Assembly (NCBI GenBank): GCA_048772705.1
Contig: JBLWGC010000217.1
Location: 26,455 to 90,454 of the forward strand
Reading direction: 5' to 3'
From: Leidyana gryllorum EB-2025a
Taxonomy: Eukaryota > Protista > Apicomplexa
DNA: 64,000 nucleotides
Shown: one piece after another, positions 3,454 through 64,000 of the stretch
How positions within the stretch are numbered: position 1 is the stretch's first letter
How the letters are laid out: every line of letters starts with the position of its first letter
The notes under the pieces: model-generated
The model's input: the letters and a program-made list of their open reading frames with translations, nothing else
Told to the model about the DNA's origin: nothing
Database searches by the model: none
Program-made: the position numbers and the translations under genes

Positions 3454-3635
3454 TTGATGCATCGATGGGCTTATAAGGAATGGCTGTCATCACGTACAAG
3501 ATTGAACAGGATGGTGTTCTGCATCTGTGGTCTAGTGGAAAACTCACTCGCTGGCATCGAGATAACCCGTTTGCGATTCTCGACAGATGCAAGATGATAG
3601 CATGATGAGTTTGTCGGCGGTTCCGATTCCGACCC

Positions 3636-3708
3636 TGGGAGTGGAGAGGATCAAACTCTCGACTTCAGGATTATGAGACCTACGCGCTACCGACTGCGCT
3701 ACACTCCC
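3636..3708 (-). tRNA. trnM: elongator tRNA-Met(CAT), T-loop C56T (possibly pseudogene)
   Basis: GGGAGTG/CACTCCC acceptor, CT CAT AA loop, T loop TTTGATC. Confidence 0.75.
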
Positions 3709-4124: not shown

Positions 4125-4976
4125 AGCAGTCTGAAGTGCATTGCTCTTCGCCCCGGTTGAAAACATTGTTGCAGCCGTCAAGTCTGTACGATCGACTGCA
4201 CCTGGCGGGACTCGAACCCGGGCTGCGAGCATGGGAAGCTCGCATCCTACTGGACCACAAGTGCACTCGAGAAAGAGCTTCAGCACCCCGAGAGTCGGCC
4301 GCAGTCTGCGTTGAGCTAGTGGGTGCCTCAGGTACTGTCAGGTTCCAGTCTGTAAGAGACTTACCATCTGGTGGCTGAGCTACGAGGCTCAGCTAAGATG
4401 ATTGGAGCTTGAGAGACTTAAGCTTTGCAGGTGCCCAGTCGATGCAGTCAAGCCGTCTGCCGGAATCGAACCGGCGACCTTTCGCTTACTAAGCGAATGC
4501 TCTGCCCCTAAGCTAAGAAGGCAATATTAGCTGGAAATCACGCATCAGTCACTATTGACGGAGGTTACTGGAGCACTTTGCTCGAATGGTCCAATGACTT
4601 GCACTGCCGGGACTTGAACCCGGATCGTGCGGGTGAAAGCCGCATATCCTAGCCACTTAGACTACAGTGGACAACTCCCTCAGCTGCAGCTTTAGCCGAG
4701 AGCCGTACCCTCTTGACAAGACGTGGTTGCAGAATCCTGCGGTAGAAAAAGGAGGATCTCTATACTAACCTCTGAAGCATTGTAGCTGGGTCTTGTAGCT
4801 CAGTCGGCAGAGCGTGTGGCTGTTAACCACAAAGTCGCAGGTTCGAAACCTGCCAGGACTGGTTTCAGAGGCACACTAAACACTGAGTGCGCTGCTCTCC
4901 CAATGGCCCTTGTGGTCTGCGACTCTTCAAAGATGTAAGTTTGTTTGGATCCCGCCACGTGCAGCCGTACGTACTT

Positions 4977-5049
4977 TGGACGACCTGGGTATCGATCCCA
5001 GTACCTCTCGCATGCGAAGCGAGCGCTCTACCATCTGAGCTAGCCGCCC
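4977..5049 (-). tRNA. trnA: tRNA-Ala(CGC)
   Basis: G3:U70, CTCGC-TT CGC AT-GCGAG, T loop ATCGATA. Confidence 0.9.
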
Positions 5050-5756
5050 ATGCGCTCTACATGGAAGACCTATTGCGTCCAGTGGCTGACCGAGGGCCGA
5101 TAAAACGGCTGACAAGAGTGGGATTCGAACCCAAGCCCTTTCGGACTGCGGCCTTAACACAGCGCCTTGGACCACTCGGCCATCTTGCCGGAGTGTTCTT
5201 GGCTCGCCACTTTACACGTTTTCTGTTCGTGAAGTCTCGAGAAGGAAGGCTTTTCTCACGGCCCGGGGTGCTTAGATGGCAACCCATCTCATTGCAGTGG
5301 CATCAGCTATTCGACGGGTAAATGACGTAATTCGTCTGACGTTCCTGTTCCATTCCATCCGGATCGATGCTTCGCTACCTCTAAAGCCTCGCTCAAAGAT
5401 TGTCCAAGTCGTCTAGTGGTTAGGACAGCACGTTGTGGCCGTGCAATCCCAGGCTCGATTCCTGGCTCGGACATGCAGTCTAAAGTGCATTGCTCTTCGC
5501 CCCGAGATGTTGAAAATATCGTTGCAGCCATGGTCAAGTCTGTACGATCGGCTGCACCTACCGGGACTCGAACCCGGGCTGCGAGCATGGGAAGCTCGCA
5601 TCCTACCCTTGGACCACAAATGCACTTGAGAAAGAGCTTCAGCACCATGAGACTCGGCCGCAGTCTGCGTTGAGCTAGTGGGTGAGAATTCATGCGTAAG
5701 TTGGTGTCTGACCCCTCCAATCATATCGCACGACAACTCCGACACTTGCCTCCTTA

Positions 5757-13530: not shown

Positions 13531-13800
13531 GACTAGCGGAGCCGTCAAATGGGAGTGTGTAGCGATCAAGACAGGACATGGGCAGCTACGCCCGATGGTG
13601 GGTGTGGGCAGACTTCACCCACATCTCCCATTCGAGACATCGGGGACATACTATCCAAGCCAGGATTCGGGCCTGGGTATGCACGGCCACAACTTGCTGT
13701 TGTAAGCACCTAGACGACCCGGACAATCTTCAAGTGAGGCTGGTGGGTACCAAAGCCACTTAAGATGTCGGGCTATCGGGTTTTTTGTCCTTGCATTCCT

Positions 13801-13873
13801 GCCGCCCTAGCTCAGTCGGTAGAGCGCAAGACTTTTAATCTTGCAGTCGCGGGTTCGAGCCCCGCGGGCGGTG
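13801..13873 (+). tRNA. trnK: tRNA-Lys(TTT)
   Basis: CAAGA-CT TTT AA-TCTTG, G73. Confidence 0.9.
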
Positions 13874-15244
13874 CAAATCAATGTCTCTGGGAGTAGGAAT
13901 GGAACCGTTGCCTACAAGCACACTCTGCTGGATTTCCACTGCCGGGACTTGAACCCGGATCGTGCGGGTGAGAGCCGCATATCCGAGCCATTTAGACTAC
14001 AGTGGACAACTTCCTCAGCTGCAGCTTTGGACGAAAGCCGTGCCATCTTGAGATGAGATGGAGCGTCGGGTCAACCGACAAGCAACGGGGCTGTTCTGGG
14101 AATCGAACCCAGGACTTCTTCCACCCGAAGGAAGAATCATACCACTAGACCAAACAGCCGCCTGTCGGTCGTGCAACCTGCTGAGTACAGTTGAGATAGT
14201 GGTCATACTATGTCGAGAACCAACAAATGCGATGGGGTCTGCTCAACAAAATGGAAAGACTTTTGGAGTTGGAGGCCGGCGTATTTAGAGCGGCCGAGAT
14301 AGTCTAGTGGTTAGTATTTCCGCCTATCACGCGCAACACCAGGTTCGATTCCCGGTCTCGGAGCACACCTGGTTGCGGCGCGACCTCAAAACTAGTCTTC
14401 ACTTCGTGAAACCTCGCCACTTCTCTTGGTCTGCGGGACCTTCGCTGCCGCCATGGTCTAGTGGTCACGACGTCTGCTTAACACGCAGAAGGTCCCGAGT
14501 TCGATCCTCGGTGGCTGTAAACTCGCGTTTGTCAGGTGAGCACCACGAAATCTAAAGCGGAAGAACGAAGTGTCTCCGAGACCGGGAATCGAACCCGGGT
14601 CTTCCGAGTGATAGGCGGAAATACTAAGCACTATACTATGTCCGACGCGGGCAGAAGGCTCGCACGGGCGCGAGGGATGACACCAAATGTCACAAACTCG
14701 CTGCCTCGGCCGTGGAGCGAACACGGGACTTCCAGATCTTCAGTCTGGCGCTCTCCCAACTGAGCTACCGAGGCACTAGGTAGTCATGGAAGGCGGTGAA
14801 AATAAGCACTTACCGCGGCCGGCCACTCCTCGCCTCACGCCGGAATCGACAGTTGCCAACTTGCCCGAGTGGGGAAGGGGGGTAGATTTGAATTCTACTG
14901 GGCCTGGACAGATCCAGCAGTTGTCGTGCGATGTGGTTGGAGGGTTAAACACCAACTCACGCTTGAATTTCTGAATGGTGGAAAAGCAACCATGTGTCAT
15001 CTGCATCGGCCGGGATTCGAACCCGGGTCGTCTCAATGGCAACGAGACATTCTACCACTAGACCACAGATGCGTGACACCTTGTTGTTGAAGCTCGTACA
15101 CGGTAACGGCCGTTTTCTGAACAAATGGAATGTCCGTGGCGTGTTCGGAGCGTCCGAGATAGCATAGTGGTTACTATTTTCGCATGTCACGCCTAAGAAG
15201 CGGGCCGATTGCCGGTAAATGAGTCTGGAACGGGGGATGGTTTT

Positions 15245-15316
15245 GGGCCTATGGCGCAACGGTAGCGCGTCTGACTACAGATCAGAAGGTTGGGTGTTCG
15301 AATCACTCTGGGCTCA
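15245..15316 (+). tRNA. Trp-body tRNA with ACA anticodon (C34A)
   Basis: TCTGA-CT ACA GA-TCAGA (15277-15279); rest matches Trp(CCA) consensus. Confidence 0.8.
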
Positions 15317-15526
15317 ACCGGACTCTATGTTTTTCCCGTTTGGGGCGCAACCTGACAAAAGTGGGATTCGGACCCACGACCTTTCGGACTCCGGTCTGAG
15401 CACAGCGCCTCAGACCACTCGGTCATCTTGCCGGGATGTTGTTGGCTCGCCGCTCCACGCGTTTTCTATCCCTGGAATCTCAAGTTGGAAGGACTTTTGG
15501 GGTTTCAGGCCGGTGTGTTCGGAGCG

Positions 15527-15598
15527 TCCGAGATAGTATAGTGGTTAGTATTTCCGCCTGTCACGCGGAAGACCCGGGTTCGATTCCCGGTCTCGGAG
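15527..15598 (+). tRNA. trnD: tRNA-Asp(GTC)
   Basis: intact consensus copy. Confidence 0.92.
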
Positions 15599-15653
15599 CA
15601 CAGTTGATCTCGCTTAAGATTGTCTTTTTTGGTGCCCGCTGAAAGTTGCGAGC

Positions 15654-15726
15654 TACAGCCACCGAGGATCGAACTCGGGACCTTCTGCGTGTTAAGCAGA
15701 CGTCGTAACCACTAGACCATGGCTGC
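15654..15726 (-). tRNA. trnV: tRNA-Val(AAC)
   Basis: TCTGC-TT AAC AC-GCAGA. Confidence 0.9.
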
Positions 15727-16208
15727 ATGGATGGTCCCCGCAGCCCAAGAGAAGTGGCGAAGCTTCAGGGAGTAGTGAGGACCAGTTCAAGGGTCGCGCC
15801 GGGATCGAACCCAGGTCGGAAAATCCAAAGTGTCGAGTGCTAACCACCAAGGACGCAACCGGTTCAGCCCATCCCAGAAGAGTCGGACTAGCGCTTCCTC
15901 AACTGGACACATGCAACACGGGTCTTGTATACAGACCCCAGCGTAAAGCGTTGGATTCGAGTCGGCCAAAATCCTCAGTTCAATCATTGAAGCAGATGCG
16001 CTCTCCCCGAATGCTACCGACAAGGGTGAGATTCGAACTCACGCGGGTAGAACCCAACGGCTTAGCAGGCCGCCGCCTTAACCACTCGGCCACCTTGCCG
16101 ACGACATGTCTTACTCGCTGGCACTTTTTCACCACGGTTTGGGGTCCTGGTCAAGCTTGCCGAACCGTATGTGACATCACTGGCCGCAAAATGCCAAGTT
16201 CGACAGGT

Positions 16209-16290
16209 GGCAACTTGCCCGAGTGGTTAAGGGGGTAGACTCGAAATCTACTGGGCCTGGCCCGCGCTGGTTCAAATCCAGCAGTTGTCG
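16209..16290 (+). tRNA. trnS: tRNA-Ser(CGA)
   Basis: GTAGA-CT CGA AA-TCTAC; same body as Ser(AGA). Confidence 0.9.
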
Positions 16291-16354
16291 TGCGATGTGG
16301 TGGAAATGATGCAATTCCCAGCATCAAAAACTCATATGGGTCGAGACAGGGAAT

Positions 16355-16426
16355 GCCTCCTTAGCTTAGGGGCAGAGCATTCGCTTTGTAAGCGAAAGGT
16401 CGCTGGTTCGATTCCGGCAGGAGGCT
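16355..16426 (+). tRNA. trnT: tRNA-Thr(TGT)
   Basis: GCCTCCT/AGGAGGC-T, TT TGT AA loop. Confidence 0.9.
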
Positions 16427-16963
16427 TCAGTCATTAGCCTAAACATGGTTGCGATCATCCGCCCGCATTTTCGGACGGCGGCTTGCACACAGCACTCGGC
16501 CATCTTGCCGAAGTGTTACCCGTTTCCTGTCCGTGAAATCTCAAAATGCGAGGAGTTCTGGGGTTGGAGGCCGGCGTGTTTACTAGCGTCCGAGATAGTA
16601 TAGTGGTCAGTATTTCCGCCTGTCACGCGGAAGACCCGGGTTCGATTCCCGGTCTCGGAGCAGTTCCAGCCCTCACAACTGGTGCAACTCCGATTTTGTC
16701 TCAGCTGGTCTGGACTTCATTCGGGATTGTACGAGTGGGAGCCGCGTATAGTAGCCGACCTTGGAGAGACGTGGCATTGAACCCAGGACTTCTTCCAGCC
16801 GCAGAAAGAATCATATAACTAGACCAAACAGCCCCCTATGGGTGCCTCAGGTACTGGCAGGTTCCAAACCTGCGACTTCGTGGCTGAGAGACTTACCTCT
16901 GATGGCTGAGCTACGATTATTGGAGTTTGCGAGCAGCTTGCCGGTGCCCAGTCGATGCAGTCG

Positions 16964-17043
16964 AGCCTTCAGCCGGATTCGAACCCACGCCCTTTCGGAC
17001 TGCGGCTTGAACACAGCGCCTTAGACCACTCGGCCATCTTGCC
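16964..17043 (-). pseudogene. Chimeric Leu(5')/Thr(3') tRNA; second copy 62468-62547
   Basis: Leu body through GTGGGTTCGAATCC, then Thr 3' end GGCTGAAGGCT and Thr downstream flank. Confidence 0.8.
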
Positions 17044-18057
17044 GGAGCGTTCTTGGCTCGCCACTTTACACGTTTTCTGTCCGTGAAGTCTCGAGGAGGG
17101 AGAACTTTTGGGGTTGAAGGCCGGTGTGTTTGTGAGCCACCGAGATAGTATGGTGGTTAGTATTTCCGCCTCTCACGCGGAAGACCCGGGTTCGATTCCC
17201 GGTCTCGGAGATAGATCGTCTTCCGCTCAAGATTCCGTGATGCTTGCCTGAACGATGTGTGTTACAGCCACCGAGGATTGAACTCCGGACCTTCTGCGTT
17301 TTAAGCAGACGTCGTGACCACTAGATGGCTGCACGGAGCTTCCGGACTGCCGAAGGGGCGTGTGTCTCCGGAAACGCGTATCCGATGAGCCTGGTTCATA
17401 TGTACCGGCCTAAGTTGGACAGCCTGGAGTAGTTAAGACCCTTCGTTCTGTATTCAGGAATGGAGGTGTCACGCATTTGTGGTTTAGTGGTAGACTGTGT
17501 CGTTGCCGCCTAGACGACCCAGGTTCGATTCCCACAGATGTAGAGAAGATGGCAGAGGGTTGATTCAGGCACCATTCTGGGGTTTCAGACTTGAGTTGTT
17601 GTCTGCCCCTCCAATCACATCATACGACAGCTGCTGGATTCGAACCAGCGCGGGCCAGACCCAGAAGATTTCAAGTCTACCCCCTTAACCACTCGGGCAC
17701 GTTGCCAACGGTCGAATTCGGCATGCCGCGAGGAGTGACCAAATGCCCCCATGTTCAGCCTGTCCTGCGGCATTGATAGGTGTCTAAACTGACCTCTCGC
17801 CTGCCAAGTCACCGCTCTACCACTTGAGATAGCCGCCCACCCGCCAAACCTGGGTGAACTTCCAATCTGAGACCGACTCACAGTTCTCTGGCGCCTCATT
17901 CGTCAGTGCAACTGTTGTGACTCGTCCACTGTAGTCTAAGTGGCTAGGATATGCGGCTCTCACCCGCACGATCCGGGTTCACGTCCCGGCAGTGGAAATC
18001 CAGCTGAGTGTGCTTGTAGGCAACAGTTCCATTCCTACTCCCAGGGAAACAGATGCA

Positions 18058-18130
18058 CACCGCCCGCGGGGCTCGAACCCGCGACTGCAAGATTAAGAGT
18101 CTTGCGCTCTACCGACTGAGCTAGGGCGGC
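18058..18130 (-). tRNA. trnK: tRNA-Lys(CTT)
   Basis: CAAGA-CT CTT AA-TCTTG. Confidence 0.9.
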
Positions 18131-18593
18131 AAGGAAGCTTTAAACTTAGTTACACCCTATTTGCCGTTGGGTGGACAGTGGAAGTCAGTTCATGTCTCCG
18201 TGTGTATATCCCGTCGCATGCACCCAAATATTTGCCGGGATGTTGTTGGCTCGCTGCTCCACGCGTTTTCTATCCCTGGAATCTCAAGATGGAAGGACTT
18301 TTGGGGTTTCAGGCTGGAGTGTTCGGAGCGTCCGAGATAGTATAGTGGTTAGTATTTCCGCCTGTCACGCGGAAGACCCGGGTTCGATTCCCGGTCTCGG
18401 AGCACAGTTGATCTCGCTTAAGATTGTCTTTTTTGGTGCCCGCTGAAAGTTGCGAGCTACAGCCACCGAGGATCGAACTCAGGACCTTCTGCGTGTGAAG
18501 CAGACGTCGTAACCATTAGACCTTGGCTGGTGGATGGTCCCCGCAGCCCAAGAGAAGTGGCGAAGCCTCAGGGAGTAGTGAGGACCAGTTCCA

Positions 18594-21429: not shown

Positions 21430-21597
21430 ACTCGCGTTTGTCAGGTGAGCACCACGAAATCTAAAGCGGAAGAACGAAGTGTCTCCGAGACCGGGAATCG
21501 AACCCGGGTCTTTCCACTAGACCACAAATGCAGAACACGATTTGGTGAATCTTGTACGTGGTGACAGCCATTCCTCATAAGCATATCGATGCATCAA

Positions 21598-21669
21598 AGC
21601 CTTCTGCCGGAATCGAACCGGCGACTTCTCGCTTACGAAGCGAACGCTCTGCCCCTAAGCTAAGAAGGC
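21598..21669 (-). tRNA. trnT: tRNA-Thr(CGT)
   Basis: TT CGT AA loop, intact stems. Confidence 0.9.
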
Positions 21670-21801
21670 AACTTAGCTGGAGAATCATGTGGCAGTTGTA
21701 TCGACAAAAGTTAGCCGGGTGCCACGTGCACGGCGGGCTGTCCCGCGCGCATCGTGGGGGCATGCTGGGATGAAGTCGCAGGTTGTCCTGACTACAACGC
21801 C

Positions 21802-21881
21802 TGACAAGAGTGGGATTCGAACCCACGCCCTTTCGGACTGCGGCCTGAACACAGCGCCTTGGACCACTCGGCCATCTTGCC
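21802..21881 (-). tRNA. trnL: tRNA-Leu(CAG)
   Basis: intact cloverleaf with V arm. Confidence 0.9.
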
Positions 21882-22277
21882 GAAATGTTGTTGGCTCGCC
21901 GCCCCACGCGTTTTCTATCCGTGGAATCTCAAAATGGAAGAACTTCTGGGGTTGGAGGCCGGCGTATCCAGAGCGTCCGAGATAGTATAGCTATCACGCG
22001 GAAGATCAGGGTCGATTCCCGGTCTCGGAGCACAGTTCGTTTTTCCGCTTCAGATTTCGTGGTGCTCAGATAAAGTTGCGAGCTACAGCCACCGAGGATC
22101 GAACTCGGGACCTTCTGCGTGTGAAGCAGACGTCGTAACCACTAGACCATGGCTGCACGGCAGCTTTCGGACTGTGAAAGGGGCGTGTGTCTCTGGAAAC
22201 AGGTATCTGATGGGGGGCGAAAACCACGGAATGCTATGAGGTCTGCACAGCGGGCGACTAGCTCAACGAGATATTAT

Positions 22278-28320: not shown

Positions 28321-28393
28321 GGGAGTGTAGCGCAGTCGGTAGCGCGTAGGTCTCATAATCCTGAAGTCGAGAGTTCGATACTCTCCAGGACCG
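28321..28393 (+). pseudogene. Chimeric elongator Met(5')/Asn(3') tRNA
   Basis: Met body through T arm, then Asn 3' strand CAGGACCG and Asn flank gtttcagaggcacactaaac. Confidence 0.82.
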
Positions 28394-29147
28394 GTTTCAG
28401 AGGCACACTAAACACTGACTGCGCTGCTCTCCCAATGGCACTTGTGGTCTGCGACTCTTCAAAGATGTAAGTTTGTTTGGATCCTGCGACGTGCAGCCGT
28501 ATGTACTTTGGACGACCTGGGTATCGATCCCAGTACCTCTCGCATGCGAAGCGAGCGCACTACCATCTGAGCTAGCCGCCCATGCGCTCTACATGGAAGA
28601 CCTATTGCATCTAGTGGCCTGCGAGGGTCGGAATCGAAACCGCCGACAAACTCATCATGCTATCGTTTTGCATCTGTCTGAATCGCACACGGGTTATCTT
28701 GATGGCAGCGAGAGACTCTTCCACTAGACCACAGATGCAGAACACGATCTTGTGAATCTTGTGCGTGGTGACAGCCATTCCTCTTAACTAATGATAGACC
28801 TAATGATGAACACGCATCAAAGCCTTCTGCCGGAATCGAACCGGCGACTTCTCGGTGACGAAGCGAACGCTCTGCCCCTAAGCTAAGAAGGCAATGTAAG
28901 CCGGGTATAACGAAAAATCGCTATAGACGTAGATTAGTGGAGCACTTTGCTAGAGTAGTTCACTGACTTCCGCTGCCGGAGTTTGAACCCGGATCGTGGG
29001 GGTGAAAGCCGCATATCCTAGCCACTTAGACTACAGTGGACGAGTGGTTGAGTTGGGGCTTCGGCCGAGAGCCGTACCGTCTTGGAAACGCTCCACCTCA
29101 GATCAAGAGGGTACGGCTCTCGGCTAAAGCTGCAGCTGAGGGAGTTG

Positions 29148-50744: not shown

Positions 50745-50827
50745 GCCTTCTTAGCTTAGGGGCAGAGCGTTCGCTTCGTAAGCGAGAAGTCGCCGGAAGG
50801 GCGTGGGTTCGAATCCCACCCTTGTCA
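50745..50827 (+). pseudogene. Chimeric Thr(CGT)(5')/Leu(3') tRNA
   Basis: Thr through AAGTCGCCG, then Leu V/T arm GAAGGGCGTGGGTTCGAATCCCAC..TTGTCA and Leu flank. Confidence 0.82.
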
Positions 50828-53725: not shown

Positions 53726-54375
53726 TGCGATCTGATTGGAGGGGCAGACAACAACTCACTCGTGAAACCCCAGAATGGTGCCTCAATCAGCCATCTGCCA
53801 TCTTCTCTGCATCTGCCGGGAATCGAACCTGGATCGTCTCGATGGCAACGACACAGTCTACCACTAAACCACAGATGCGTGACATCTCCATTCCTGAATA
53901 CAAAGCGAAGGGTCTTAAAACTAGTCCAGGCCGTCCAACTTAGGCCGATACATAAAAACCAGGCTCATCGGATACGTGGTTGCAGAGACACACGCCCCTT
54001 TCGCAGTCCGGAAGCTCCGTGCAGCCATCTAGTGGTCACGACGTCTGTTTAACACGCAGAAGGTCCCGAGTTCCATCCTCGGTGGCTGTAACACGCATCG
54101 TTCAGGTGAGCATCACGAAATCTAGAGAGGAAGACGATCTATCTCCGAGACCGGGAATCGAACCCGGTATTCCGCGTGACAGGCGGAAATACTGACCACT
54201 ATACTATCTCGGACGCTAGTAAAGATGCCGGCCTCCAACCCCAGAAGTCCTCGCATTTAGAGATTTCACGGACAGGAAACGGGTAACACTTCGGCAAGAT
54301 GGCCGAGTGCTGTGTGCAAGCCGCCGTCCGGAAATGCGGGCGGATGATCGCAACCATGTTTAGGCTAATGACTGA

Positions 54376-54447
54376 AGCCTCCTGCCGGAATCGAACCAGC
54401 GACCTTTCGCTTAGAAAGCGAATGCTCTGCCCCTAAGCTAAGGAGGC
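54376..54447 (-). tRNA. Thr(TGT)-body tRNA with TCT (Arg) anticodon
   Basis: TTCGC-TT TCT AA-GCGAA (54413-54415); otherwise matches 16355-16426. Confidence 0.75.
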
Positions 54448-55485
54448 ATTCCCTGTCTCGACCCATATGAGTTTTTGATGCTGGGAATTGCATCATTTCC
54501 ACCACATCGCACGACAACTGCTGGATTTGAGCCAGCGCGGGCCAGGCCCAGTAGATTTCGAGTCTACCCCCTTAACCACTCGGGCAAGTTGCCACCTGTC
54601 GAACTCGGCATTTTGCGGCCAGTGATGTCACATACGGTTCAGCAAGCTTGACCAGGACCCCAAACCGTGGTGAAAAAGTGCCAGCGAGTAAGACATGTCG
54701 TCGGCAAGGTGGCCGAGTGGTTAAGGCGGCGGCCTGCTAAGCCGTTGGGTTCTACCCGCGTGAGTTCGAATCTCACCCTTGTCGGTAGCATTCGGGGAGA
54801 GCGCATCTGCTTCAATGATTGAACTGAGGATTTTGGCCGACTCGAATCCAACGCTTTACGCTGGGGTCTGTATACAAGACCCGTGTTGCATGTGTCCAGT
54901 TGAGGAAGCGCTAGTCCGACTCTTCTGGGATGGGCTGAACCGGTTGCGTCCTTGGTGGTTAGCACTCGACACTTTGGATTTTCCGACCTGGGTTCGATCC
55001 CGGCGCGACCCTTGAACTGGTCCTCACTACTCCCTGAAGCTTCGCCACTTCTCTTGGGCTGCGGGGACCATCCATGCAGCCATGGTCTAGTGGTTACGAC
55101 GTCTGCTTAACACGCAGAAGGTCCCGAGTTCGATCCTCGGTGGCTGTAGCTCGCAACTTTCAGCGGGCACCAAAAAAGACAATCTTAAGCGAGATCAACT
55201 GTGCTCCGAGACCGGGAATCGAACCCGGGTCTTCCGCGTGACAGGCGGAAATACTAACCACTATACTATCTCGGACGCTCCGAACACACCGGCCTGAAAC
55301 CCCAAAAGTCCTTCCAACTTGAGATTCCAGGGATAGAAAACGCGTGGAGCGGCGAGCCAACAACATCCCGGCAAGATGACCGAGTGGTCTGAGGCGCTGT
55401 GCTCAGACCGGAGTCCGAAAGGTCGTGGGTCCGAATCCCACTTTTGTCAGGTTGCGCCCCAAACGGGAAAAACATAGAGTCCGGT

Positions 55486-55557
55486 TGAGCCCAGAGTGAT
55501 TCGAACACCCAACCTTCTGATCTGTAGTCAGACGCGCTACCGTTGCGCCATAGGCCC
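55486..55557 (-). tRNA. Trp-body tRNA with ACA anticodon (second copy)
   Basis: inverted duplicate of 15245-15316. Confidence 0.8.
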
Positions 55558-57753
55558 AAAACCATCCCCCGTTCCAGACTCATTTACCGGCAATCGGCCC
55601 GCTTCTTAGGCGTGACATGCGAAAATAGTAACCACTATGCTATCTCGGACGCTCCGAACACGCCACGGACATTCCATTCGTTCAGAAAACGGCCGTTACC
55701 GTGTACGAGCTTCAACAACAAGGTGTCACGCATCTGTGGTCTAGTGGTAGAATGTCTCGTTGCCATTGAGACGACCCGGGTTCGAATCCCGGCCGATGCA
55801 GATGACACATGGTTGCTTTTCCACCATTCAGAAATTCAAGCGTGAGTTGGTGTTTAACCCTCCAACCACATCGCACGACAACTGCTGGATCTGTCCAGGC
55901 CCAGTAGAATTCAAATCTACCCCCCTTCCCCACTCGGGCAAGTTGGCAACTGTCGATTCCGGCGTGAGGCGAGGAGTGGCCGGCCGCGGTAAGTGCTTAT
56001 TTTCACCGCCTTCCATGACTACCTAGTGCCTCGGTAGCTCAGTTGGGAGAGCGCCAGACTGAAGATCTGGAAGTCCCGTGTTCGCTCCACGGCCGAGGCA
56101 GCGAGTTTGTGACATTTGGTGTCATCCCTCGCGCCCGTGCGAGCCTTCTGCCCGCGTCGGACATAGTATAGTGCTTAGTATTTCCGCGTATCACTCGGAA
56201 GACCCGGGTTCGATTCCCGGTCTCGGAGACACTTCGTTCTTTCGCTTTAGATTTCGTGGTGCTCACCTGACAAACGCGAGTTTACAGCCACCGAGGATCG
56301 AACTCGGGACCTTCTGCGTGTTAAGCAGACGTCGTGACCACTAGACCATAGCGGCAGCGAAGGTCCCGCAGACCAAGAGAAATGGCGAGGTTTCACGAAG
56401 TGAGGACTAGTTTTGAGGTGGCGCCGCAACCAGGTGTGCTCCGAGACCGGGAATCGAACCCTGATCTTCCGCGTGTCAGGCGGAAATACTAACCACTAGA
56501 CTATCTCGGCCGCTCTAAATCCGCCGGCCTCCAACTCCAAAAGTCTTTCCATTTTGTTGTGCAGACCCCATCGCATTTGTTGGTTCTCAACATAGTATGA
56601 CCACTATCTCAACTGTACTCAGCGGGTTGCACGACCCACAGGCGGCTGTTTGGTCTAGTGGTATGATTCTTCCTTCGGGTGGAAGAAGTCCTGGGTTCGA
56701 TTCCCAGAACAGCCCGGTTGCTTGTCGGTTGACCCGACGCTCCATCTCATCTCAAGATGGTACGGCTTTCGTCCAAAGCTGCAGCTGAGGAAGTTGTCCA
56801 CTGTAGTCTAAGTGGCTAGGATATGCGACTCTCACCCGCACGATCCGGGTTCAAGTCCCGGCAGTGGAAATCCAGCAAGGTGTGCTTGTAGGCAACGGTT
56901 CCACTACTCCCAGAGACATTGATTTGCACCGCCCGCGGGGCTCGAACCCGCGACTGCAAAATTAAAAGTCTTGCGCTCTACCGACTGAGCTAGGGCGGCA
57001 AGGAAGCTCTAAACTTAGTTACACCCTATTTGCCGGTGGGTGGATCCGTGGAAGTATTGAGTGGTGGAACAATGTGCTTCAGTAACTTCCGTCAATAGGG
57101 ACTCATTCGTGATGTCCAGTTAACATTGCCTTCTTAGCTTGGGGCAGAGCACTCGCTTAGTAAGTGAAAGGTCGCCGGTTCGATTCGGGCAGAAGGCTTG
57201 GCTGACGAGCCAATCTGTCCTGCAACTGTTCCCTTCTGCGCACACTTAGCAGTGCGTCGTTTCGATCGACGGACCTTTGCGTTATGAGCCTAACACTCTT
57301 CCACTGAGCTACACTGCTCAGTCTGCACCATGGAAGAGGTAGCCGGAATGTGATCCTCGAGATGTTAGTTGCCCTGACTGCCCTACCGAAGCGGGCTAAC
57401 GAGGTGGCTGTGTTGGTTCTGAGGGCAACATGTCCGGTCAGACAATAGGGCTGTTCTGGAATCGAACCCAGGACTCCTTCCACTCTGAGGAAGGATTATA
57501 CCAGCAGAGCAACAGCCGAATACTTGGGTGCATGCAACCGGATATACAAATGCAGATTCGAATCTACTGTGGCCTTTTCCAGCTTTTTTTGGGATGATCG
57601 CCGTTGCACAGACTGGGATTCGAACCCATGCAGACTTGCGCCTACCAGAACTTGAGTCTGGCCCCTTAGACCACTCGGGCATCTGTGCATTACTTTCCTT
57701 CTGAGTTCCAAAGTGTTAATGGCTTCCGTTGCGACCTCCGATGTCGTTCTAAC

Positions 57754-59951: not shown

Positions 59952-61032
59952 ACGAAAGCTTTGCGGGAACCAAGAGAAGTTGCGAAGTTTCAAGAAGTAG
60001 AACTAGTTGCGAGGTCGCGCCGGGAATCGAACCCAGCTCGGGAGATCCAAAGCTTCCAGTGCTAACCATTCACGACCAAGAATTAAAAGAGTGTATGAAG
60101 TCATTGGGATTGGAAATGAATGCGTTCAGAGCTGGTACCCACCCGATCGTTGGCGTGGCAGGCGGAAATATAACTTTGATACCATGTCGGAGGCACGTCC
60201 CAACCTCAGAGCCCAGCTTTTCCATTCTCTAGCTTCAACAGACAGGGAACGCTTGGAGTAGCGGGACAGGAACCGAGCTGATAAGATGGCTGAGGGGTCC
60301 AAGGCGCTGTATGCAAGTCGCAGTTCGAAAGGGCGTGGGTCCAAATCCCACTCTTGTCAGGTTGAGCCTGACACGGGAAAAACAAAAGAGTCTGATTGAG
60401 CCCATAGTGATTCGAAAACCCAACCTTCTGATCTGGAGTCAGACGCGGTACGTTGGCCATAGACCCAAAACCATCCCCCGCTCCAGACTCATTACTTGGT
60501 GGTCAGGAATGGAGGTGTTACGCATCTGTGGTCTAGTGGTAGAATGTCTCGTTGCCATCGAGACGACCCGGGTTCGATTCCCGGCAGATGCAGAGGACAC
60601 ATTGTTGTTTTTTCCAGAAATTCATGTGTCAGTTGGTGTTTACCTCTCCAACCACATCGCACGACAACTGCTGGATTTGAACCAGCGCCGGACAGGCCCA
60701 GTAGATTTCTAGTCTACCCCCTTAACCACTCGGGCAAGTTGCCGCTGTCGAACTTGGCATTCTGCAGCCAGTGGCTTCGCATACGGTTCAGCACTGCTCG
60801 CGCCGGCACGAACCCGCCGTTCTCGCATCGAACGTCTTGCGCGCCACCGACGGAGTTGGGGCGGCAAGGAAGCTCGCCCTGTACCTGGGGAAGGCCCAAG
60901 ATCCCACGATCAATACAAATGGAATTGGTTACTAAGTCCGAATCTGTATCAGAGATCCACTCACTTGACCACGCCGACATTCCTTTTCCAAGACGGTACG
61001 GCTCTCGGCCGAAGCCCCAACTCAACCACTCG

Positions 61033-61105
61033 TCCACTGTAGTCTAAGTGGCTAGGATATGCGGCTTTCACCCGCACGATCCGGGTTCAAGTCCCGGTCT
61101 CGGAG
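61033..61105 (+). pseudogene. Chimeric Glu(TTC)(5')/Asp(3') tRNA
   Basis: Glu through GTTCAAGTCCCGG, then Asp 3' strand TCTCGGAG and Asp flank cacagttgatctcgc. Confidence 0.85.
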
Positions 61106-64000
61106 CACAGTTGATCTCGCTTAAGATTGTCTTTTTTGGTGCCCGCTGAAAGTTGCGAGCTACAGCCACCGAGGATCGAGCTCGGGACCTTCTGCGTGTT
61201 AAGCAGACGTCGTATCCACTAGACCATGGCTGCATGGATGGTCCCCGCAGCCCAAGAGACGTGGCGAAGCTTCAGGGAGTAGTGAGGACCAGTTCAAGGG
61301 TCGCGCCGGGATCGAACCCAGGTCGGAGAATCCAAAGTGTCGAGTGCTAACCACCAAGGACGCAACCGGTTCAGCCCATCCCAGAAGAGTCGGACTAGCG
61401 CTTCCTCAACTGGACACATGCAACACGGGTCTTGTATACAGACCCCAGCGTAAAGAGTTGGATTCGAGTCGGGCAAAAACCTCAGTTCAATCATTCAACC
61501 AGTTGCGCTCTCCCCGAATGCTACCGACAAGGGTGAGATTCGAACTCACGCGGGTGGAACCCAACGGCTTAGCAGGCCGCCGCCTTAACCACTCGGCCAC
61601 CTTGCCGACGACATCTCTTACTCGCTGGCACTTTTTCACAACGGTTTGGGGTCCTAGTCAAGCTTGCCGAACCGTATGTGACATCACTGGCCGCAAAATG
61701 CCAAGTTCGACAGGTGGCAACTTGCCCGAGTGGTTAAGAGGGTAGACTCGAAATCTACTGGGCCTGGCCCGCGCTGGTTCAAATCCAGCAGTTGTCGTGC
61801 GATGTGGTGGAAATGATGCAATTCCCAGCATCAAAAACTCATATGGGTCGAGACAGGGAATGCCTCCTTAACTTAGGGGCAGAGCATTCGCTTTGTAAGC
61901 GAAAGGTCGCTGGTTCGATTCCGGCAGGAGGCTTCAGTCATTAGCCTAAACATGGTTGCGATCATCCGCCCGCATTTTCGGACGGCGGCTTGCACACAGC
62001 ACTCCATCTTGCCGAAGTGTTACCCGTCTCCTGTCCGTGAAATCTCAAAATGCGAGGAGTTCTGGGGTTGGAGGCGGCGTGTTTACTAGCGTCCGAGATA
62101 GTATAGTGGTCAGTATTTCCGCCTGTCACGCGGAAGACCCGGGTTCGATTCCCGGTCTCGGAGCAGTTCCAGCCCTCACAACTGGTGCAACTCAGATTTT
62201 GTCTCAGCTGGTCTGGACCTTCATTCGGGATTGTACGAGTGGGAGCCGCGTATAGTAGCCGACCTTGGAGAGACGTGGCATTGAACCCAGGACTTCTTCC
62301 AGCCGAAGAAAGAATCATATAACTAGACCAAACAGCCCCCTATGGGTGCCTCAGGTACTGGCAGGTTCCAAACCTGCGACTTCGTGGCTGAGAGACTTAC
62401 CTCTGATGGCTGAGCTACGATTATTGGAGTTTGCGAGCAGCTTGCCGGTGCCCAGTCGATGCAGTCGAGCCTTCAGCCGGATTCGAACCCACGCCCTTTC
62501 GGACTGCGGCTTGAACACAGCGCCTTAGACCACTCGGCCATCTTGCCGGAGCGTTCTTGGCTCGCCACTTTACACGTTTTCTGTCCGTGAAGTCTCGAGG
62601 AGGGAGAACTTTTGGGGTTGAAGGCCGGTGTGTTTGTGAGCCACCGAGATAGTATGGTGGTTAGTATTTCCGCCTCTCACGCGGAAGACCCGGGTTCGAT
62701 TCCCGGTCTCGGAGATAGATCGTCTTCCGCTCAAGATTCCGTGATGCTTGCCTGAACGATGTGTGTTACAGCCACCGAGGATTGAACTCCGGACCTTCTG
62801 CGTTTTAAGCAGACGTCGTGACCACTAGATGGCTGCACGGAGCTTCCGGACTGCCGAAGGGGCGTGTGTCTCCGGAAACGCGTATCCGATGAGCCTGGTT
62901 CATATGTACCGGCCTAAGTTGGACAGCCTGGAGTAGTTAAGACCCTTCGTTCTGTATTCAGGAATGGAGGTGTCACGCATTTGTGGTTTAGTGGTAGACT
63001 GTGTCGTTGCCGCCTAGACGACCCAGGTTCGATTCCCACAGATGTACAGAAGATGGCAGAGGGTTGATTCAGGCACCATTCTGGGGTTTCAGACTTGAGT
63101 TGTTGTCTGCCCCTCCAATCACATCATACGACAGCTGCTGGATTCGAACCAGCGCGGGCCAGACCCAGAAGATTTCAAGTCTACCCCCTTAACCACTCGG
63201 GCACGTTGCCAACGGTCGAATTCGGCATGCCGCGAGGAGTGACCAAATGCCCCCATGTTCAGCCTGTCCTGCGGCATTGATAGGTGTCTAAACTGACCTC
63301 TCGCCTGCCAAGTCACCGCTCTACCACTTGAGATAGCCGCCCACCCGCCAAACCTGGGTGAACTTCCAATCTGAGACCGACTCACAGTTCTCTGGCGCCT
63401 CATTCGTCAGTGCAACTGTTGTGACTCGTCCACTGTAGTCTAAGTGGCTAGGATATGCGGCTCTCACCCGCACGATCCGGGTTCACGTCCTGGCAGTGGA
63501 AATCCAGCTGAGTGTGCTTGTAGGCAACAGTTCCATTCCTACTCCCAGGGAAACAGATGCACACCGCCCGCGGGGCTCGAACCCGCGACTGCAAGATTAA
63601 GAGTCTTGCGCTCTACCGACTGAGCTAGGGCGGCAAGGAAGCTTTAAACTTAGTTACACCCTATTTGCCGTTGGGTGGACAGTGGAAGTCAGTTCATGTC
63701 TCCGTGTGTATATCCCGTCGCATGCACCCAAATATTTGCCGGGATGTTGTTGGCTCGCTGCTCCACGCGTTTTCTATCCCTGGAATCTCAAGATGGAAGG
63801 ACTTTTGGGGTTTCAGGCTGGAGTGTTCGGAGCGTCCGAGATAGTATAGTGGTTAGTATTTCCGCCTGTCACGCGGAAGACCCGGGTTCGATTCCCGGTC
63901 TCGGAGCACAGTTGATCTCGCTTAAGATTGTCTTTTTTGGTGCCCGCTGAAAGTTGCGAGCTACAGCCACCGAGGATCGAACTCAGGACCTTCTGCGTGT
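61092..64000. repeat. At least 2.9-kb direct duplicate of about 15585-18496
   Basis: Constant offset 45504-45507 between matching ORFs (16761/62265, 17497/63001, 18171/63675). Confidence 0.9.
63835..63906 (+). tRNA. trnD: tRNA-Asp(GTC)
   Basis: intact consensus copy. Confidence 0.9.

Follow-up and report, generated by a model that had tools for sequence, protein, structure and literature searches.

The 64,000-nucleotide stretch of DNA analysed here (the window) carries five hybrid tRNA genes, each beginning as one tRNA gene and ending as another of a different isotype. Within this one assembly, the five hybrids are confirmed as real rearrangement scars. Their junctions point to an origin in microhomology-mediated joining or template switching, to which we give a probability of about 0.7.

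The window is the final 64 kb of contig C217 (90,454 bases), in an assembly of 15.5 Mb and 237 contigs. ARAGORN finds 263 eukaryote-type tRNA genes in it, on both strands, and Rfam gives 266 tRNA matches. These are eukaryotic nuclear-type genes, among them ones with A34 anticodons (AGC, AGG, AGT, AAC, AGA, AAG, ACG and AAT), together with 80-nt Tyr genes and an initiator Met having ATCGAAA in the T loop. Near-identical genes of 72-84 nt form an array with one gene per about 250 bp. The assembly has probably not resolved this array completely, with contigs ending inside young repeats. C217 ends inside a 2.9-kb copy at window position 64000, and C61:1-3441 recurs 56 kb away at C61:56574-60000 with 99.1% identity.

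Five inter-isotype fusions had been claimed, and all five are present as tRNA-derived hybrids, one of them in two copies within the window. ARAGORN calls none of the five intervals.

61033-61105, forward strand: Glu(TTC)/Asp hybrid pseudo-tRNA; Glu positions 1-65 up to 61097, then the Asp 3' acceptor strand TCTCGGAG at 61098-61105
28321-28393, forward strand: elongator-Met/Asn hybrid; Met positions 1-65 up to ...CTCTCCA, then the Asn end GGACCG, with CCA shared
16964-17043, reverse strand: Leu/Thr hybrid, copy 1; Leu positions 1-59 and Thr positions 63-73, with TCC shared inside GGTTCGAaTCC
62468-62547, reverse strand: Leu/Thr hybrid, copy 2, within the 2.9-kb duplicate
50745-50827, forward strand: Thr(CGT)/Leu fusion of 83 nt; Thr positions 1-52 joined out of register to Leu positions 46-80
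21483-21531, reverse strand: Gly/Asp fusion; the Gly 5' end, about 20 nt, followed out of register by Asp positions 43-72, with the join at GGAA

The Glu/Asp join lies between 61097 and 61098, and the sole identity shared by the two parents at this point is TCCCGG (61092-61097). At the Thr/Leu join, the parents overlap by 4 bp (50793-50796). The Glu/Asp, Leu/Thr and Met/Asn hybrids are thus joined in register and the Thr/Leu and Gly/Asp fusions out of register. The Gly piece of the Gly/Asp fusion came from a copy of a decayed Gly gene that is found, on the opposite strand, in the elongator-Met downstream flank (window 3476-3541 and 28690-28720). An Asp-type tRNA body with a CTC (Glu) anticodon, seen in both copies of the 2.9-kb duplication (17138-17211 and 62642-62715), is an anticodon point change and not a hybrid.

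Judged by their predicted folding, the hybrids are almost certainly inert, because no more than 2-4 of the seven acceptor-stem positions are paired and the Rfam score drops. Four pairs form in Glu/Asp and in Met/Asn, three in Leu/Thr and two in Thr/Leu; none of these has a seven-pair stem. In the Glu/Asp hybrid, cmscan marks three non-canonical acceptor pairs, and its RF00005 score is 37.3 bits, above the gathering score of 29, compared with 59.4 bits for intact Glu(TTC) copies. The A and B boxes of the hybrids are intact, so that transcription would be possible.

The sequences beside the hybrids identify their origins. The family of a tRNA gene can be read from the 25 nt adjoining it, with 0 errors in 800 leave-one-out tests over 230 kb. 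With this typing, the upstream flank of each hybrid is assigned to one family and the downstream flank to another, in agreement with the original observation that the 3' strand and the downstream flank switch together. The votes for the upstream and downstream flanks are Glu 23 and Asp 26 for Glu/Asp, Leu 20 and Thr 22 for Leu/Thr, Thr 7 and Leu 18 for Thr/Leu, and Gly 1 and Asp 5 for Gly/Asp. For Met/Asn, the downstream flank is of the Asn type (18 votes) and the upstream side matches about 40 elongator-Met loci genome-wide, the homology ending at the junction. Both parents were identified for every junction. The blocks on the two sides of each hybrid have their nearest relatives at separate loci, as expected of a rearrangement endpoint.

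The blocks on either side of the Glu/Asp join are the following.

60283-61097, forward strand: left block with Gly, Ser-AGA (reverse strand) and the 5' part of Glu, ending inside the Glu/Asp hybrid
61098-64000, forward strand: right block, a copy of 15591-18496 that reaches the contig end

The left block is 93% identical to 32221-31386. Its best relative, which has an intact Glu gene, is C81:49190-50846, with 97.5% identity over 1660 bp. The right block corresponds to the 2.9-kb duplication whose left end had been placed at this junction. This placement is correct, the homology proper beginning at 61098. Over 2965 bp, 61040-64000 and 15534-18496 are 98.65% identical. The differences in the right block are mostly substitutions, with 24 located before 62306 (the first 1.2 kb) and 2 in the last 1.7 kb. 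The copy runs off the contig, since C217 ends at window position 64000. A simple deletion between adjacent Glu and Asp genes finds no support in the left-parent locus on C81, which continues into Thr and an inverted Asp block; this closest left-parent locus does not have the right block downstream of its Glu gene. A near-match to the Glu/Asp signature at C81:67097 was discarded because it is merely an Asp gene with two T-loop mutations.

The parents of the other hybrids were placed in the same way. The block on the Thr side of Leu/Thr (15380-16985) matches C217:21222-19618, a locus with an intact Thr gene, at 97.3% identity. For Thr/Leu, the left (Thr) block matches 21618-21931 at 99.7% identity and the right (Leu) block matches 5144-4710 at 97%. 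The Leu/Thr and Thr/Leu hybrids were considered as the reciprocal products of one crossover. This was ruled out because their junctions differ (60-62 in the former, Thr 52/Leu 46 in the latter). Reciprocal Asp/Glu or Asn/Met hybrids were looked for in 230 kb and none was seen.

Three of the five junctions recur elsewhere. The exact Leu/Thr signature has three copies (two in C217 and one at C29:2479), the exact Thr/Leu signature has two (C217 and C43:31705) and the exact Gly/Asp signature also has two (C217 and C79:21788). Their presence on other contigs indicates that they were inherited through later duplications, alternative haplotype contigs being another possibility. The Glu/Asp and Met/Asn junctions are each single-copy in the 15.5-Mb assembly and rest on this one assembly; a metagenome scan, an uninformative search in this case, gave no match to the Glu/Asp junction. 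A chimeric read, template switching during amplification or a mis-extended contig tip might therefore account for the Glu/Asp join and perhaps for that of Met/Asn. Being unique and located 2.9 kb from the end of C217, the Glu/Asp junction invites such a suspicion. In addition, the 98 nt to its left are identical to at least 25 other loci, and amplification chimeras do look like in-register switching between similar templates. Nevertheless, we regard an artefact as very unlikely. Because only 3-6 nt are shared at the joins, mis-threading induced by repeats cannot make them and a chimeric molecule is needed; with the 6 nt shared at the Glu/Asp join, assembly k-mers across it must stem from reads with the hybrid in them. 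Relative to its nearest copy, the right block carries 27 changes, so that it is a distinct locus and not one used twice. Finally, three sister hybrids of like kind recur on other contigs, and older hybrids bear later mutations, which shows that the process is truly genomic.

The Met/Asn hybrid has a second junction a short distance downstream.

28387-28623, forward strand: patch of 237 bp from an Asn-Ala (reverse strand) cassette, replacing the last 8 nt or so of the Met gene
28625-28782, forward strand: canonical elongator-Met downstream flank, resuming from its +1 base

The patch aligns to 4855-5090 of the Asn/Ala cassette and contains the Asn 3' end, its spacer and the Ala gene on the reverse strand. 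CCA is shared at its left end and AGGG at its right end. Beyond it, 28625-28782 matches the reverse complement of 3476-3636 at 89% identity, and flanks of the GGGTCGGAATCG type are found downstream of at least 15 of the 19 full elongator-Met genes. Met/Asn is thus an insertion into an elongator-Met gene and not a simple crossover; it has the signature of a templated insertion.

Such an arrangement raises the question of whether the hybrids are short patches of non-crossover gene conversion instead of the ends of rearranged blocks. The elongator-Met flank present on both sides of the 237-bp foreign patch would fit this proposal, as would a Phe/Lys hybrid on C81 in which Lys sequence occurs only at positions 49-71 and the downstream flank belongs to neither family. 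At the other four window hybrids, however, the foreign sequence runs 0.4-2.9 kb into the flank and neighbour genes of the other family. A return to the original flank soon downstream was looked for and is absent at four of the five hybrids. Even at Met/Asn, the patch adds a whole Ala gene and lengthens the locus, which makes it an insertion. Gene conversion is consequently a highly improbable source of the hybrids, and we retain their interpretation as rearrangement endpoints.

A census of such joins was made in 230 kb (the whole of C217, the whole of C81 and positions 1-60000 of C61), which yielded 939 ARAGORN calls, 855 full single-family genes and 1430 tRNA-like loci. Every locus was painted against 30 family consensus sequences by a mosaic aligner with two penalties, one for in-register and one for out-of-register jumps. 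A single cheap jump penalty filled the flanks with noise segments of 5-9 nt; hence the separate penalties and the flank typing. Breakpoint positions were taken from the ends of BLAST and mosaic alignments, with an accuracy of about 2 nt. The census gave nine independent in-register cross-family hybrids, where about one is expected from random joining (Poisson probability about 1e-6). Their crossovers, in tRNA positions, are as follows.

11-24: Ser-GCT/Ser-AGA hybrid
23-33: Arg-ACG/Arg-TCG hybrid
28-35: Ala/Thr hybrid
45-48: Phe/Lys hybrid
49-56: Glu/Gly-CCC hybrid
49-53: Ala/Pro hybrid
60-62: Leu/Thr hybrid
60-65: Glu/Asp hybrid
63-65: Met/Asn hybrid

Each of these joins shares 3-14 nt of identity. 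Summed over the nine hybrids, the shared runs amount to 62 nt, compared with 37.7 nt at random in-register points (p=0.010). Similarity between tRNA genes thus does guide one class of joins, for which the D arm, the anticodon stem and the variable loop are as suitable as the T arm. Hybrids make up about 0.8% of the tRNA-like loci.

Several loci met in the census deserve a description. The Ala/Thr hybrid (L015:2543-2645, that is C61:32543-32645) crosses in the anticodon stem-loop, where its parents share TCGCTTAG, and later mutations make ARAGORN read it as Ile-AAT. In the Phe/Lys hybrid (L010:2550-2652, that is C81:62550-62652), the Lys sequence is confined to 49-71; as the downstream flank is neither Phe nor Lys, a second junction must sit at the 3' end. 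An 87-nt out-of-register Glu/His fusion on the reverse strand (L003:2922-3036, that is C217:22922-23036), joined at GCACG, is called tRNA-Glu(CTC) by ARAGORN. In the sampled contigs (C217, C81 or C61), a Cys(GCA) gene carries an internal 15-nt tandem duplication, GACTGCAGATCAGCA, across the anticodon loop.

The joins of the array as a whole show the same use of short identities. At 69 clean junctions inside tRNA genes, an overlap of at least 3 nt (3-9 nt) is present in 33% of cases, compared with 5% under a null model of blunt joining (p=2e-13). Of the whole set, about a quarter are blunt and a quarter have gaps of 1-5 nt. Unequal crossing-over would be expected to leave shared identities of tens of bases or more. 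The 3-14 nt found at the cross-isotype joins are far shorter than classical homologous recombination needs. The mixture of overlaps, the templated patch and the occurrence of joins in any register and orientation argue for end joining or template switching and against classical crossing-over. We infer both this repair pathway, which is deduced from junction anatomy only, and the inertness of the hybrids.

We therefore propose the following scheme, in keeping with these junctions. Reshuffling of the array would proceed chiefly by illegitimate, microhomology-assisted joining (end joining and/or replicative template switching) that ignores gene boundaries. The hybrids would be the non-functional scars of those segmental rearrangements in which both ends fell, by chance, inside tRNA genes. 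When both ends lie in tRNA genes of the same strand, short common runs may favour joining in register, as in Glu/Asp, Leu/Thr and Met/Asn. The guiding runs could belong to the T arm but also to the D arm, the anticodon stem or the variable loop. Microhomology out of register would give the Thr/Leu and Gly/Asp fusions.

A stronger role for the tRNA genes was originally put forward, in which the conserved T arm/B box supplies the microhomology for rearrangement. Taken as the preferred microhomology, it would make the tRNA genes the nodes that drive rearrangement of the array. Some of the data do point this way. Crossovers at positions 49-65 are found in three of the five window hybrids and in five of the nine in-register hybrids (p=0.037), in-register joins are enriched about 9-fold, and the shared runs are longer than expected. 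Breakpoints in general tell otherwise. After removal of inherited copies, 132 break events internal to tRNA genes were left. Among the 78 that retain the 5' part, 27 lie at 49-65, compared with the 34% expected (p=0.50), and 5 of the 54 that retain the 3' part start there, compared with 12% expected. The T arm thus takes its share of sequence and is not a preferred breakpoint overall, which for breakpoints in general is the outcome named in advance as refuting the T-arm idea. Even among the in-register hybrids, four of nine cross outside it, in the D arm, the anticodon stem-loop or the variable loop.

The same conclusion holds at the level of whole genes. Ends of blocks with at least 95% identity fall in or at full tRNA genes in 21-25% of cases, while these genes occupy 27.5% of bases. 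For the 45 youngest long duplicates, 48 of 85 ends are in spacer. The partner of a clean tRNA-internal break is spacer in 51 of 69 cases (74%), a tRNA piece of the opposite strand in 11, a tRNA piece in register in 5 and one out of register in 2. Exchange through tRNA genes exists, then, but it is a minority of the joins. A linkage test that tolerates indels does give a mild excess at genes, which may reflect a mild preference for them. The pairing of flanks is kept with a frequency of 0.376 or 0.462 across a gene, versus 0.496 or 0.625 across a 73-nt spacer. Linkage is therefore lost at 0.62 versus 0.50, or 0.54 versus 0.375, that is 1.2-1.4-fold more switching across the gene, computed from pairs that are not independent. 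When indels are not tolerated, the decay is equal across genes and spacer.

Exchange between genes of the same isotype was predicted to leave no scar, and block ends bear this out: when a block spans an entire gene, it ends at the far edge in 67 cases and at the near edge in one. Genes of one family share their whole 72-84 nt, so that an exchange between them has no internal scar and is visible only as a switch of flank. One duplicate in the window has both ends of this kind.

54143-57005: inverted 2.87-kb duplicate of 13796-16660, 98.57% identical over 2867 bp

One end falls at the 3' edge of an Asp gene and the other at the 5' edge of a Lys gene, which is what scarless same-isotype exchange predicts. 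The Asp downstream flank changes type at this duplication (54143-57005 / 13796-16660).

This 67:1 ratio and the linkage results also speak for tRNA genes as drivers. Set against the breakpoint and block-end counts, they leave a model driven by T arms or tRNA genes unlikely. What stands of the claim that chimeras mark cross-isotype crossovers is that the hybrids mark rearrangement junctions inside tRNA genes; two of the five were joined out of register, and at Met/Asn the event is an insertion. The statement that T arms drive rearrangement is accordingly lowered to the statement that tRNA similarity biases a minority of joins. An intermediate version would make the tRNA genes slightly fragile points, for instance where Pol III transcription collides with replication, and homeology-guided repair between them would have driven both the amplification of a small tRNA cluster into thousands of copies and its scrambling. 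We consider it distinctly unlikely. If true, it would turn the hybrids into datable markers for reconstructing the history of the array.

With microhomology-mediated joining as the preferred reading, the hybrids provide base-resolution junctions with known parents for the scrambling of a tRNA mega-array, by a process that would be mostly position-blind and not specific to tRNA genes. Junctions that recur on other contigs can serve as markers of the order of duplications. The hybrids also call for caution in annotation, as gene finders call some hybrids or anticodon-mutated copies as odd isoacceptors (the Ala/Thr hybrid as Ile-AAT, for instance).

The literature searched gave no account of tRNA arrays in gregarines, nor of nuclear arrays with hybrid tRNA genes. 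Related systems are known. Junctions of the MMEJ and FoSTeS/MMBIR types occur at segmental duplications. The present junctions resemble them in sharing 0-14 nt, in being blunt, microhomologous or with small insertions, in including a templated patch with two ends and in occurring in either orientation. They differ in that the pathway is read here from scars alone and in their unusual substrate, genes of 72-84 nt placed every 250 bp or so.

In fission yeast, Munz, Kohli and colleagues reportedly described, in the 1980s, ectopic intergenic conversion between dispersed serine tRNA genes. There too, different tRNA genes exchange segments in register through their similarity. Those events are said to be non-crossover conversions between near-identical isoacceptor genes that keep their function, whereas the present hybrids join different isotypes (45-82% identity), change flanks and kill the gene.

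The closest known parallel is found in the plastid genomes of cereals. Chimeric tRNA pseudogenes located at inversion ends have been attributed to recombination that joined different tRNA genes (Hiratsuka et al. 1989, as cited in PMC5033401). There, as in the present array, dead hybrid tRNA genes lie exactly at the ends of rearranged segments, and dispersed tRNA genes supply the short similarity. The cereal case consists of a few inversions in an organelle genome whose tRNA genes, about 30 in number, are dispersed. The array described here is nuclear and has thousands of copies on both strands; its hybrids are a small minority among spacer joins, and they include a templated insertion and out-of-register fusions. 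The hybrids are the same kind of scar as those of the cereal plastid, formed in a very different setting.
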